DNA of 64,000 nucleotides from Paramoeba atlantica. Taxonomy: Eukaryota; Protista; Discosea. Shown here piece after piece: positions 3,381 to 61,934 of the stretch. The stretch spans positions 186,001-250,000 of the forward strand of contig CDRNVI010000059.1 in the NCBI GenBank assembly GCA_977017575.1. Reading direction: 5' to 3'. The stretch's first letter is position 1, and each line of letters starts with the position of its first letter. A program made the position numbers and the translations under genes. Below the pieces are notes generated by a model. That model was not told the DNA's origin. It saw nothing but the letters and a program-made list of their open reading frames with translations, and did no database searches.

Positions 3381-4101
3381 CATGCAGGGCGAGACCTGCA
3401 GAGATATTTAGGCCCAGCAGAGGTAGGCGCAATCAACGCTCCCTGCTGGTCCTTTTCGCCTTCCTCGGCGACACAGGGAAATGCGCGGGATATCTGCCCC
3501 GGGAAGGCGAAGAGAGACGGCCTCATCGGGATAAGATGTCCCAAGATGCTCAGTGAGCGCAATGCGCCAGGGAAGACATACGGATCTATAGGACGCGGAT
3601 GGTATTCCCATCGTACATGCTACAAATGACTTCCATGGTTCATGATACAACATGGTCAGGGCCATGGATGCATGCTGGCAAATGGAGTCATGGTTCATGA
3701 TGCATCATGGGCATCGGGGTCCCACAGAATCCGCCACGGCTGGTGAGCAAGAGAGGTGCATAGAGCATCCTCTAGAACACGCATGCAACGTGTTTGCTCG
3801 CCGTGTGGGAGACTTCCGGTATATGGAAGCCTCCTGCGCGCAGCAGTACCGGTGTCGCGCGATGGGGAAGACACGCCGCGTGGTCCCGTAGTTGGGTCCT
3901 GCAGCGCATGGGGACTCGGAACCATGTTCCGAGCGGGGTGGTGGGAGATGAAGGAAGGGAGGCGCACCCCTACTTTGCGACAAGAGGGACAGTTCCTCTC
4001 CTAGCGCCATCCGGAAACGGGCATTGACATAGTAAAAATATGCCCGTTTCCGGGAGAGAAAAGATGAGCTAGGAAAAAAAACAACAAGGTACAGAAACTG
4101 T
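3381..4101 (-). other. SL-headed inserted segment (putative retrocopy), no intact ORF
   Basis: The minus strand begins with the SL-like 20-mer, then a T9 run and a 14-bp hairpin, then GC-rich sequence. It abuts and truncates a Tc1 fragment at 4101. The left boundary is uncertain (T6 at 3375-3380). Confidence 0.45.
4082..4101 (-). other. spliced-leader 3' end relic ACAGTTTCTGTACCTTGTTG
   Basis: 17/19 identity to the conserved kinetoplastid SL end CAGTTTCTGTACTTTATTG. An identical 20-mer is at 61876-61895. Confidence 0.75.
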
Positions 4102-4495
4102 TATCGCACCACTTTATCGTGCAAAATTTTGAGATCTGTACGTTCCCGTTATCTTTAGCTCATTTCGAAAAATAAAAAAAAGTTGAATTTGTTTCTAATT
4201 TTTTTTCACTTTTCATGCCAAAAAATACGTATCGACTCCCCAGGGGTGGTCTTACAGAAAGTGGAAAAGTGTTATTACGCATGAGGCTTGGCCAAGGGGT
4301 TGCGATAAGGCAACTAGTCCGCGAGTTTAATGTCAATATGAAGCATATTCGAAAATATTTGAAAAAAAATCGCCGGAAAATATTTATTCTCTGAGCCCTG
4401 AAATAAAAAAAGAATCAAAAAACGGAGAAGCCTCGTTAAAGATACTATTGAACCTTTAGACCGAGCGGGGGTTCCCATAAATGGGTCTGCTCGCA
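4101..4495 (+). mobile_element. Tc1-like fragment (subterminal region plus N-terminal HTH), same family as 42747-44081
   Basis: caaaattttgagatctgtacgttccc is shared with ~43975-44000 (inverted). The translation PRGGLTESGKVLLRMRLGQGVAIRQLVREFNVNMKHIRKYL parallels ORF 43695-43904. Confidence 0.7.
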
Positions 4496-48863: not shown

Positions 48864-49603
48864 TAATTAATATGTATATTAAATCGTAAAGAATTAATTA
48901 TTAGTTCGTAGAGAATTAATTATTAATTCGTAAAGAATTAATTAGGCGGAATTCTATTAATATAGGGTAGCGAGGGAATAGCATCTCCCTCAATAATAAG
49001 AACTAATGCATGTTGATAACTTTTAAAACAGGTCACAATGTGAAACGTTAAACAACATACATGTACTGTGACCCCCCCTTTAATATGCACACGTTTTTGG
49101 GGTTTGTGCATATTAAAGGGGGGGGGGGGGGGGGTAAGAGAGGGGAGAACCCGCCGCCCCCCCCCCCAAAAAAAAACATTTGCGCCGCTTCGCGGCGCCT
49201 TTCTCTCCTGTGCGTGTTTTGATCTTCCGTCGCACAAGCTTACGTCGCATAGCGTATGGTACTTTTCAGCAGAGATGATGGCCGGGGCGGGGGGACTGTT
49301 CGTGTGTGCCAGCATGGAAAATGTGAAGAACGTGTACATATTAAATATTAAAATATTTAATAAAAAATATTATTTGTAAGTTTAATTGTTGTAGCTCATA
49401 TTATTAATACATGAAGTAAATGTCATGTATGGTGAAACACGAAGAAGAGGGCGCGTACTAATGCAACAAGAAGCTAGTGCGGGGAAAAGTGTAGAAGCAT
49501 CGAACAAAACATGGAAAAACCCCCACAAAAAATATCAGTGTAAAATTTGAGTATAATAGCGCGCACATAAACTTATTTTGGATAGGAATTTGTATCTCCG
49601 TCA

Positions 49604-50172
49604 TTAATTTTCGGACAGCTCCCATCCATCCGCGGTCGCATCTTCAAGCTGCACATCGTTTATCAAATTGATTGTATACTCACAATCGGAATCTGAGTCA
49701 CGGAGCGCTCCGACGGTTTCTTCGTCAGTACTTTGTTTTTCAGGAAGTGATGGAATTCCTGGTCCGCACGGCCACCATGACTTAGAAAGATTCTTTCGGG
49801 TCAAAACATTATTCACCCTACTGAATGTGGCAGGATAGAACAGGAATGAACATAAATTGTTCACTACATGTATTCCACATTCATTTAGCGTAGGCTCCTG
49901 CTGCATGACTGGAGCATGTCGAAGACGAACATCCTCTATTGAGTGACCAAGAAGAGGACAGAATAATTTTAGAAAGCACTGAAGAAAATCTTGACGAGCA
50001 ATCGGAGAATAACCCTCGTAACTATCAAATATTGTCAACAGATGCTTTCGGAGTTCCACGAAAAAAAAATGGTTGTTAAAAAAGAGCACCGCAATAATTC
50101 GTGAGTCGGGGAAAATATGACTGAACATTTTGCGCTGAAAACCTAAAAGTAATCGAGTCTTTCCTGTGTTCA
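49604..50172 (-). CDS. Ulp1/SENP-like cysteine protease domain (peptidase C48), -1 frame continuation of the transposase
   Basis: FFNNHFFFV (His), IFDS (Asp), QQEPTLNECG (Gln, Cys) in clan CE order. One extra T in the T5 run at 50172-76 gives RICFLNT in frame. Confidence 0.8.
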
Positions 50173-51789
50173 AAAACAAATTCTTTTGTCTGCGGAAGGG
50201 GCTAGGCGGTATGCCTGCAATACATTTTCGCATAATGTATCAACAGCATGCGTCGTAAGAAATCGCTTTCGACCGCGGAATCGTTTCCACTCTTTGTCAT
50301 AGTGGGACGTGTTGCCCGCACTATCTTCTACCACAATGGATTCTTGTGTGGGTTTTTCTCCTTTTGAAATTGAGGAGGGTGAGACGGCATGTTCAGGACA
50401 TATTCCAAGAGTAGTTTTTGAGCCAACTGTAACGCTTGACTCAATCCAAGGGTATTCAGTCGCAGGTCGCAAAATGTAAGTTTGTGCAACTTTTAATAAA
50501 GTGCTCTGGTTTTTTGCCCATACATGTGCATGTGCATCCTTAATCCATTGCAAAACAAGCGCACGAGTAACCTTCTGGAAGCTATTTCGAAGTCGCCACG
50601 CGCTAAGAAGCTCATTATATTGACGCTTGAATAAGCGATTAAAAACGCGATCATGGAATTGTATGGCTTTCGTACACCCTCCGGGTATCGTCTGTGGATC
50701 ACAATTCGTTGGTACATTATTCGTTCTATGAGCGGTATAATCGTCCGTGATAATAACCGTCGAGGGGTTGTCAAGAGTATAGTGTAAATATTTCTTTAAC
50801 ATTCGCTCATAGACATCGTCAGTAACCCACCCAGAACGACTTACATCGATGTAAATCCCGCTCAGAGAATAAGCTAGACGTGTCATTTCAGTGTAAATGG
50901 TAGAGCTTTCTCGATTCTTTGCATTGTGCTCAAAGATCACCGTTGGGTAAAGTGGAAATACCTTATCCAAAGCAAAATCATACACACCTGCAAGAAAAGC
51001 TGTAACTGTTTCTTTCGGATTGGTATCCACGACTTTTGGCTGTGGGCAACCAATCGGAGCAAGAGTGTATCCTTGAACTTCTCCATTGACAAACATCGCA
51101 GTTTCGTCACCGAAGAAAGCGAAGCGATACTTACGCACAGTGTTTTGAGTATAAAATTTCTCTGCCCACTGAGAGATTCGAAATTCTACGTCACTGGGCG
51201 CCAGGCACTGCGTTCGACCCCATCTCCGCCACACCCATCCATAGTGCTTTTTGAAACGCTGATAAGTGTCTTCTAAAGCTGTTATAGAAGTTAATCTCGT
51301 TTTCTGTCGGATCAAATCGATCACCATCGACTTGGTCAGTGGGCACCACAATGCGGAGGCCTGCTCACAAGCACGATGAACAGACAGCATTGCCTCAGCC
51401 TTATCATAGACTTCGGCATTCGCATCACTATAATCCCCCCCTCTTTCATTGAATCCCCGGTTCCGGTGTTGGTTTCCCATGTTGCGGTTAATTAACTTTT
51501 GGTAGTGGTCAATCCCCGTTTTACGAATTTCATAAACCGCTCTCCGTGATATACCATACTTTTGTTCGATTTGCTTTACAGAACTTTGAGATCTACAAAT
51601 TTCTCGTTTCTCGAATATAGTAAGTTCAGTACGCTGCCGTTTTTCCTGAACTGTTACCGTCGGGGTGTTGTTAATAATAAGGGATGTGCGCTCCCCTACT
51701 TGCGGTTGGGGAGGGAGCTTCCGAAGCCAAGTGGTCAGAGGTCCACGCACAGAGTGAACTGTGGTCGGAACTCCGTCAGTATCTGACAT
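50170..51789 (-). CDS. pogo-like transposase (CENP-B-N/psq HTH, Tc5 HTH, DDE_1; DD30D)
   Basis: RTELTIFEKREIC...KYGISRRAVYEI; FFGDETAM; IITDDYTAH; IPGGCTKAIQFHD. 539 aa from MSDTDG (ATG 51789). Confidence 0.9.
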   Translation of the reverse strand: MSDTDGVPTTVHSVRGPLTTWLRKLPPQPQVGERTSLIINNTPTVTVQEKRQRTELTIFEKREICRSQSSVKQIEQKYGISRRAVYEIRKTGIDHYQKLINRNMGNQHRNRGFNERGGDYSDANAEVYDKAEAMLSVHRACEQASALWCPLTKSMVIDLIRQKTRLTSITALEDTYQRFKKHYGWVWRRWGRTQCLAPSDVEFRISQWAEKFYTQNTVRKYRFAFFGDETAMFVNGEVQGYTLAPIGCPQPKVVDTNPKETVTAFLAGVYDFALDKVFPLYPTVIFEHNAKNRESSTIYTEMTRLAYSLSGIYIDVSRSGWVTDDVYERMLKKYLHYTLDNPSTVIITDDYTAHRTNNVPTNCDPQTIPGGCTKAIQFHDRVFNRLFKRQYNELLSAWRLRNSFQKVTRALVLQWIKDAHAHVWAKNQSTLLKVAQTYILRPATEYPWIESSVTVGSKTTLGICPEHAVSPSSISKGEKPTQESIVVEDSAGNTSHYDKEWKRFRGRKRFLTTHAVDTLCENVLQAYRLAPSADKRICF

Positions 51790-52330
51790 AAGGGTGAAAA
51801 GTACGAGAGAAAGAGAGGAACAAGTATACAAATATATATTATCTCCACATACATAGATGCACATCAGAGGCTTAAAAGCACAAAGCCCTTTGAAGAAATT
51901 GGGTAAAAATAGGCAAAACATCTGCTTTTAAAAAAACGCTCCGAAAATTCAACATGGAATTTGTGCATATTAAGGGGGGGGAGGGAAGGGGGTGCATATT
52001 AAAGGGGGGGTCACAGTATGTTGTTGTATGTATTAGCAACAGAACACGATTCTTTTTCAAAATCTGCCATACAGCAATTGTCCATTTTTCGGACGATCAT
52101 TTTACCTAAATAAAACATAGACTATTTAGAACATTATATGCGTGCATATGACATTAGAAGACGTGCATTTGCGTCACTGCATCTCGATCAAGTTATTTTG
52201 GCAGTTCGCTTTCTTTTGGTAAGCGAAATTGGTAACCTATTGGATATTGTAGTAGAAGTATTAACATCTAGGCAAAATTAAGATTCGTACTGATATTTTG
52301 AGGGTTTTCTTAAAGGGATAAAAACACGTT

Positions 52331-61875: not shown

Positions 61876-61895
61876 ACAGTTTCTGTACCTTGTTG
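61876..61895 (+). other. spliced-leader 3' end relic ACAGTTTCTGTACCTTGTTG
   Basis: Identical to 4082-4101 (minus strand), followed by a second accttgttg and a pyrimidine tract. Confidence 0.8.
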
Positions 61896-61934
61896 ACCTT
61901 GTTGTCTCTTTTTTTCCCTACCCTTTACAACGAC

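Follow-up and report, generated by a model that had tools for sequence, protein, structure and literature searches.

The question raised by the 64,000-nt window of contig CDRNVI010000059.1 (the window; all coordinates below are positions in it) is why a DNA transposon of 2,951 bp, at 49066-52016, carries a protease-like reading frame that overlaps the end of its transposase gene one base out of phase. A preliminary description had proposed a pogo-like element encoding a fusion of transposase and Ulp1-type protease, and had offered three causes for the break between the two: a programmed -1 slip, a recent deletion, or an assembly error. We consider it probable that the locus is a recently inserted cut-and-paste element of the pogo superfamily (IS630-Tc1-mariner), that it belongs to a small clade in which a C-terminal CE-clan Ulp1/SENP-like domain is part of the same polypeptide of about 728 amino acids (aa), and that the split in this copy is the result of decay.

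The claim of perfect ends held. A perfect 27-nt inverted repeat (49064-49090 / 51992-52018) consists of a TA dinucleotide and a 25-bp terminal inverted repeat (TIR), with TA at both ends of the element. The TIR 25-mer has two exact occurrences in the window, against 0.00 expected by chance (none in 100 shuffles). The related copies L001, L004 and L006 are likewise flanked by TA.

The listed minus-strand open reading frame (ORF) of the transposase begins at 51921, comprises 583 aa and stops with the TGA at 50172-50170. We placed the start at 51789, at a methionine that is conserved in the relatives (MPHTDGVPTTVH / MNSVEGPLTSW). The protein matches Pfam DDE_1 (PF03184) with 31.8 bits, above the curated cut-off of 22. 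Its catalytic triad, assigned from the motifs FGDET, TDDYTAH and HDRVFNRLFK and not from a structure, consists of D228 (51108-51106), D349 or D350 (50745-50740) and D380 (50652-50650). The spacing is thus DD30D, as proposed earlier, or DD29D. For the N-terminal helix-turn-helix (HTH) region, Pfam returned only HTH_28, with an E-value of 0.08 that lies below the cut-off, the segment being too diverged. The element therefore combines a TA duplication and TIRs with a DDE_1 match above cut-off and a DDD spacing within the DD29-56D range of pogo elements (PMC7386202). It resembles the pogo superfamily (pogo, Tigger, Fot1-like) in its TA duplication, short TIRs, DDE_1 core, aspartate as third catalytic residue and spacing of 29-30 residues, and differs from it in having a C-terminal Ulp1-like protease domain.

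The frame that encodes most of this domain is open for 189 codons (LNTGK...ELSEN), from LNTGKTR... to a stop at 49606-49604. The His-Asp-Gln-Cys set noticed in the preliminary description proved to be genuine: His (50071-50069), Asp (50026-50024), Gln (49900-49898) and Cys (49879-49877) align in the same order to the catalytic residues of Ulp1 and Ulp2. In a profile alignment, the family motifs HF, DS and QQxPxxNxC fall on these positions, and all four residues are kept in the window, in L001 and in the relatives P0012, P0009, P0014 and P0017. An exhaustive HMMER search of 1.8 billion representative sequences identified 14 relatives, and two of the more distant among them, P0014 and P0017, pass Pfam C48 with 29.3 and 31.6 bits. 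When the family profile was compared with PDB sequences, the best matches were Ulp2, Ulp1 and SENP1/5/8 (E about 1e-4).

Structure prediction points in the same direction. An AlphaFold2 model of residues 548-770 of P0012 reached a predicted local distance difference test score (pLDDT) of 83.5 and a predicted template-modelling score of 0.76. The best 50 PDB matches of this model all belong to clan CE, with template-modelling scores of about 0.5-0.6, and include SENP2/5/1/3/7, Ulp1/2, NEDP1, XopD, NopD and adenain. The window's own protease piece was modeled with a pLDDT of 76 (core >90); its top Foldseek matches were SENP5, Ulp2, Ulp1 and SENP1, and 24-26% of about 100 aligned residues are identical to Ulp1. 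Nonsynonymous divergence (dN) between subfamilies lies at 0.33-0.59 in the protease and at 0.18-0.27 in the transposase, with synonymous sites saturated, and omega is 0.16 in the only pair for which saturation allowed its computation. These values indicate that the domain evolved under constraint, both across subfamilies and in another organism.

On the basis of alignments and models, the downstream module is a Ulp1/SENP-like CE-clan protease domain with an intact catalytic set. It shares the modeled fold and the His-Asp-Gln-Cys arrangement with yeast Ulp1/Ulp2 and human SENP1/2/5 (MEROPS C48), and is unlike them in having His-Phe and not His-Trp, a shortened N-terminal subdomain and a fusion to a transposase. 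The domain is compact, with about 65 residues before the catalytic His; about 110 residues precede this residue in Ulp1.

Transposase and protease are encoded together in the relatives. P0012, which comes from a 2.66-kb contig (L005) of an unrelated run, is a single uninterrupted ORF of 784 aa with DDE_1 at 338-445 (23.8 bits in Pfam) and the protease at about 560-735. The RFLTTHAVDTLCENVLQAY segment at the end of the window's transposase frame aligns to residues 561-590 of P0012, and the matching helix of the P0012 model (residues 17-32) has a pLDDT >90. The earlier suggestion that the Ulp1-like part (RFLTTHAVD) already begins in the transposase frame was therefore right, and with the first helix of the fold in that frame, the break in the window falls inside the domain and not between genes. 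In assembly ERZ24900291 of the same species, there are several diverged subfamilies whose copies are flanked by TA and have TIR tips that are almost identical. Two of its copies, L001 (63% aa identity) and L006, read ...LTTHAVD...FLNTG... in one frame and are residue-for-residue collinear with the window, and P0008 also crosses the junction in frame. Word-indexed protein searches with the transposase, P0012 and the family alignment returned five relatives (P0001-P0004 and P0018), all from ERZ24900291, in addition to P0012. These sequence comparisons support a single ancestral ORF for transposase and protease; joined, the window's transposase and its -1-frame stretch would total 728 aa.

The zero-frame codons at the junction are UGU UUU UGA (context AGA ATT TGT TTT TGA), exactly as first described. 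Further alleles were read from assembler contigs of four public runs with the same organism label, and three such contigs cross the junction (Table 1). X1, about 99.5% identical to the window, reads AGA ATA GTT TTT TTG AAC, which is in frame (KRIVFLNTGK) and has the same junction codons as L006 (GAA ATA GTT TTT TTG AAT). X3 is split exactly like the window. In X2, a G>T change on the coding strand creates a T9 run, at the window's length at 50179. L001 is in frame without any T-run (ATG TTC CTA). The split form is ATTTGTTTTTGAA (13 nt) and the in-frame form ATAGTTTTTTTGAA (14 nt), and ATTTTTTTTTGAA is a further form. The in-frame and the split allele (ATA GTT TTT TTG versus ATT TGT TTT TGA) differ by a small complex change with a net difference of one base. 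The idea that one extra U restores the fusion needs correction, in that the in-frame allele found elsewhere is not a simple extra U. The in-frame form is ancestral, and the split form is a genuine allele that is present in independent read-derived sequence.

Table 1. Features of the element in the window and contigs that cross the junction.
Feature	Position	Strand	Basis or content
TA target-site duplication, left	49064..49065		direct reading and inverted-repeat search
Left TIR, 25 bp (CTGTGACCCCCCCTTTAATATGCAC)	49066..49090	+	perfect match to right end
Subterminal inverted copy of inner 20 nt of TIR, left end	49105..49124	+	palindrome with 49072-49091
Poly-G and poly-C tracts within left end	49118..49167		reads and contigs break there
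C48/Ulp1-like protease core and acidic tail, -1 frame relative to transposase	49604..50173	-	profile and model
Ser/Asp cluster, then hydrophobic I/V/L core (DSDSDCEYTINLIND), resembling a SUMO-interacting motif	49655..49699	-	motif reading only
Junction ATT TGT TTT TGA	50170..50181	-	TGA ends transposase frame; protease frame runs on from one base earlier
First helix and linker of protease fold (RFLTTHAVDTLCENVLQAY...KRICF)	50173..50265	-	in transposase frame
Transposase ORF, 539 codons and TGA	50170..51789	-	ORF list, Pfam, motifs
Psq/CENP-B-like HTH, motif-level	residue ~50 onward, from 51642	-	resemblance only
Subterminal repeat of 20-nt TIR core, right end	51962..51981	+	repeat search
Right TIR, 25 bp	51992..52016	-	perfect match to left end
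TA target-site duplication, right	52017..52018		direct reading and inverted-repeat search
Contig X1, crosses junction	50027-50579		50177 C>A, 50179 A>C, +T after 50179, 50195 G>A, 50206 G>A
Contig X2, crosses junction	50027-51114		8 substitutions including 50177 C>A; one gap, place not listed
Contig X3, crosses junction	49924-50610		15 substitutions elsewhere, 0 gaps; split junction same as window

Several accounts of the two frames have to be weighed against decay. On one view, the transposase was never part of a fusion, and the protease frame is a gene of its own, a captured piece of a host SENP gene that is expressed independently. In favor of this, the window does contain two ORFs, with an ATG at 50233 in the second. 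That ATG, however, opens 20 codons that are out of frame and overlap the transposase. The transposase frame already contains the first helix of the protease fold, P0012 is one ORF, and L001, L006, P0008 and X1 read collinearly and in frame across the junction. We give this arrangement next to no credence, and rejected it because the fold of the second ORF begins within the transposase frame. The break could also be a programmed -1 ribosomal frameshift, in which tRNA-Phe would slip on U UUU U with UGA in the A site, so that the element would make both the 728-aa fusion and the transposase alone. If the P-site tRNA slipped once on the U5 run, the product would be precisely ...KRICFLNTGK..., and the finding of the same split junction in X3, which differs from the window at 15 other positions, means that the allele persisted or spread. 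The zero frame, however, lacks an X XXY YYZ tandem-slippage heptamer, which leaves only a single-tRNA slip on U5. The 120 nt downstream do not form a distinctive structure (minimum free energy -17.3 kcal/mol versus a shuffle mean of -17.5, z 0.07; 106/200 shuffles fold equally well, in pseudoknot-free folding). The two-frame arrangement is not conserved either, as the reading is in frame in L006 and X1, which have a T7 run, in L001, which has none, and in P0012 and P0008; moreover, the break lies inside the protease fold and not at a domain boundary. Programmed frameshifting is therefore very improbable.

The remaining technical account, a homopolymer error in the assembly or consensus of a copy that is really in frame, appears improbable as well. 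The break lies in a T-run region, in which X1, near-identical elsewhere, differs from the window by 4 substitutions and 1 insertion within 30 nt, and the element contains several long homopolymers (T9 at 50061-50069, G18 at the left end). X3, a second read-derived contig, nevertheless crosses 49924-50610 ungapped with the window's letters at 50177-50206, so that a pure assembly error is probably not the cause, and X2 has the window's length at 50179. The differences at 50195 and 50206 are plain substitutions outside homopolymers and fit allelic variation, not consensus error. Of the three causes originally offered, a recent deletion is the best fit, as the relatives and X1 are in frame and X3 carries the same split. 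With in-frame copies found in L001, L006, P0008, P0012 and X1, the fusion stands and the programmed shift is unsupported. We conclude that the junction is likely to be a genuine decay mutation in a slippage-prone T-run, and as such an ordinary lesion of little interest in itself.

For an intact member of the clade, the following mode of action can be proposed. The N-terminal HTH would bind the TIR and the subterminal repeats, and the left subterminal copy of the TIR core would be an extra transposase-binding site. The DDD triad would perform TA-targeted excision and integration in standard cut-and-paste fashion. The protease would act as an isopeptidase on a ubiquitin-like modifier, for which SUMO is the likeliest candidate, and its targets in cis would be the modified transposase or else chromatin or repair factors in the vicinity. 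In the window copy, the net loss of one base places TGA after Phe539 and shifts the protease core into the -1 frame, so that the fold is interrupted behind its first helix. At best, such a copy may still produce a transposase, one that stops 31 residues into the protease domain, and it would make no functional protease; the frameshift would then be a decay mutation and not a regulatory device.

Some observations weigh against the reading of the locus as a decayed member of a clade with a functional fusion. Pfam Peptidase_C48 scores only 12.9-13.1 bits for the window's protease ORF alone, below the cut-off of 20.7; of the two domain assignments made at the outset, DDE_1 passes its cut-off in the window itself (31.8 versus 22) and Peptidase_C48 does so in the relatives P0014 and P0017. 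The ORF alone being sub-threshold, its membership depends on the profile and fold evidence. Phe, not Trp, follows the catalytic His of the window domain; Trp is usual at this position in SENP/Ulp1. The junction alleles were read from assembled contigs, not from raw reads, and X1, which is in frame at the junction, has a 1-base insertion of its own after 49808, late in the protease. A fully intact copy of the window's subfamily was not seen, and all copies in ERZ24900291 are broken. None of the RNA runs searched contains the element.

Several observations concern the protease region more generally. The catalytic His codon is directly followed by the T9 run at 50061-50069 (-) (CAT TTT TTT TTC), a second slippage-prone site. 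Residues 48-83 of the protease ORF match a protein of 2299 aa (P0007) eight times (E 1.6e-12), and this protein looks repetitive. The motif of Ser/Asp and I/V/L residues in the C-terminal tail (DSDSDCEYTINLIND) recurs in L001, P0005, P0006, P0012 and P0018 and is followed by a conserved Trp (DGW/EGW). Located after the protease, it is a candidate SUMO-interacting motif (SIM).

A preference for SUMO is suggested because it is SUMO proteases that the domain matches most closely, in sequence as in fold, and because the SIM-like tail (49655-49699) recurs. Removal of SUMO as a means to counteract silencing, as in the preliminary description, is one reasonable hypothesis, and echoes a proposal made for the Ulp1 domains of Ginger1 and Mutator elements (PMC2836005). 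The domain could also shield the transposase from inhibition that depends on SUMO, have chromatin or repair factors as its targets, or serve in self-processing. It is possible, though on balance unlikely, that the protease is real and that its job is neither SUMO removal nor counter-silencing, and that it works instead in self-processing, on ubiquitin or NEDD8, or as a non-catalytic binding module. The CE-clan matches of the fold search also include NEDD8 proteases, bacterial deubiquitinases and adenain, the adenain-type CE proteases of Mavericks and viruses provide a precedent for self-processing, and His-Phe replaces the usual His-Trp. On the other side, the best sequence and fold matches are the SUMO proteases Ulp2, Ulp1 and SENP1/2/5, none of the four catalytic residues is lost in P0012 or in the subfamilies compared, and the SIM-like Ser/Asp and I/V/L motif, identified by motif reading only, recurs in the C-terminal tail.

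Capture of Ulp1-type proteases by transposons is common. As stated earlier for Mutator, Ginger and Zisupton, such domains are known in Ginger1, Mutator (KI-MULEs), CACTA (Transposase_24), hAT and Zisupton elements, and Ginger1 carries a CE-clan Ulp1 domain as a C-terminal extension of its transposase (PMC2836005). Plant clusters of hAT with Ulp1 and of Transposase_24 with Ulp1 are among the nearest fold matches. The window element is like these groups in encoding a CE-clan Ulp1 domain and unlike them in its transposase superfamily, so that it would represent an independent capture. A transposon-borne Ulp1 protease is already known, and it is the pogo chassis that is new here. In the literature on pogo, Tigger, Fot1 and mariner, we found no description that joins these elements to Ulp1, C48 or a SUMO protease. 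The word protease is absent from a systematic pogo survey (PMC7386202), which also does not list the host, apparently a euglenozoan protist.

The novelty of the combination is nevertheless qualified by database entries. All ESM Atlas clusters nearest to P0012 have DDE_1. The nearest one by language-model features (score 0.91, 186/256 features shared) is annotated as 'Ubiquitin-like protease family profile domain-containing protein' and comprises 64 members from Basidiomycota of about 1151 aa, with DDE_1 in 69% and Peptidase_C48 in 53%. This cluster is like the window family in having DDE_1 and Peptidase_C48 together, a likeness by annotation, and unlike it in being fungal and much longer. The claim of novelty is thus weakened: it agrees with the papers found, but the architecture of DDE_1 with C48 probably already exists, unremarked, in databases.

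Other copies and contigs from the same species show a variety of rearrangements. L004 (ERZ24900291) represents the same locus, with 99.96% identity over 5.2 kb, and leaves the element at L004 position 5242, which corresponds to 50549 in the window. Beyond this point it continues for at least 4 kb in unrelated, repeat-bearing DNA, and a contig of a further run (X4) has the same breakpoint. The breakpoint is a structural polymorphism, namely an insertion or rearrangement inside the element. As the match of L004 ends short of the junction, it provides no junction allele. In-frame internal-deletion derivatives are found in two other subfamilies (L003 5001-5954; L009 788-2155 and 4001-5368, P0018). 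They encode proteins of 317 and 455 aa that pass from the N-terminal part of the transposase straight into the C-terminal part of the protease. P0018 is present twice in tandem, and the L009 subfamily has different ends (CCCCCCCACTTATGCGCAACCG). In L002 (6454-7764), an ORF of 436 aa adjoins a truncated copy of the element; this ORF has apparent reverse transcriptase/RNase H-like retroelement sequence, and its start contains repeated PPLYY/PPFIMH motifs that are translated from TIR-like repeats.

The TIRs are much more abundant than the interior of the element. In the runs of X1-X3, contig depth over the TIRs (49066-49103 and 51912-52016) is roughly 10-40x that of the internal region, with many different flanks. 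This may reflect either many short TIR-bearing derivatives or tips that are common to subfamilies. The 22-nt tip of the TIR is identical in L001 and L006.

The element is oriented antisense to the flanking plus-strand ORFs, and an Rfam search of the window gave no match. Elsewhere in the window, ACAGTTTCTGTACCTTGTTG followed by a T-rich run is found at 61876-61899 (+) and 4077-4102 (-), two exact 12-mer matches against 0.01 expected. ACAGTTTCTGTACCTTGTTG resembles the 3' end of kinetoplastid or diplonemid spliced leaders, and two insertions in the window begin with it. These insertions and the dense, intron-less ORFs suggest a euglenozoan host, which could not be confirmed; an Atlas search with the adjacent gene for diphthamide synthesis yielded no taxonomic signal.

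At least five other transposon superfamilies have independently acquired Ulp1-type proteases. To our knowledge, no one has shown what such a protease does for its element, and a compact pogo-type element of less than 3 kb that has a single ORF and integrates simply at TA would be a tractable system in which to address this role. In the literature searched, DNA transposons of kinetoplastids were first reported in 2021, and comprised Merlin only (PMC8101967). The present elements add a recently active DNA transposon group with multiple subfamilies to a kinetoplastid-looking lineage, for which the literature searched records only Merlin relics. A more far-reaching reading, which we put forward as doubtful speculation, is that euglenozoan protists harbor a pogo clade that relies on a SUMO protease borne by its transposase and followed by a SIM-like tail. 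This protease would take SUMO off the transposase or off chromatin or repair factors nearby, and intact members such as P0012 may still be active. If this were true, SUMO would be a front line of transposon control in a group in which DNA transposons were reported only in 2021.

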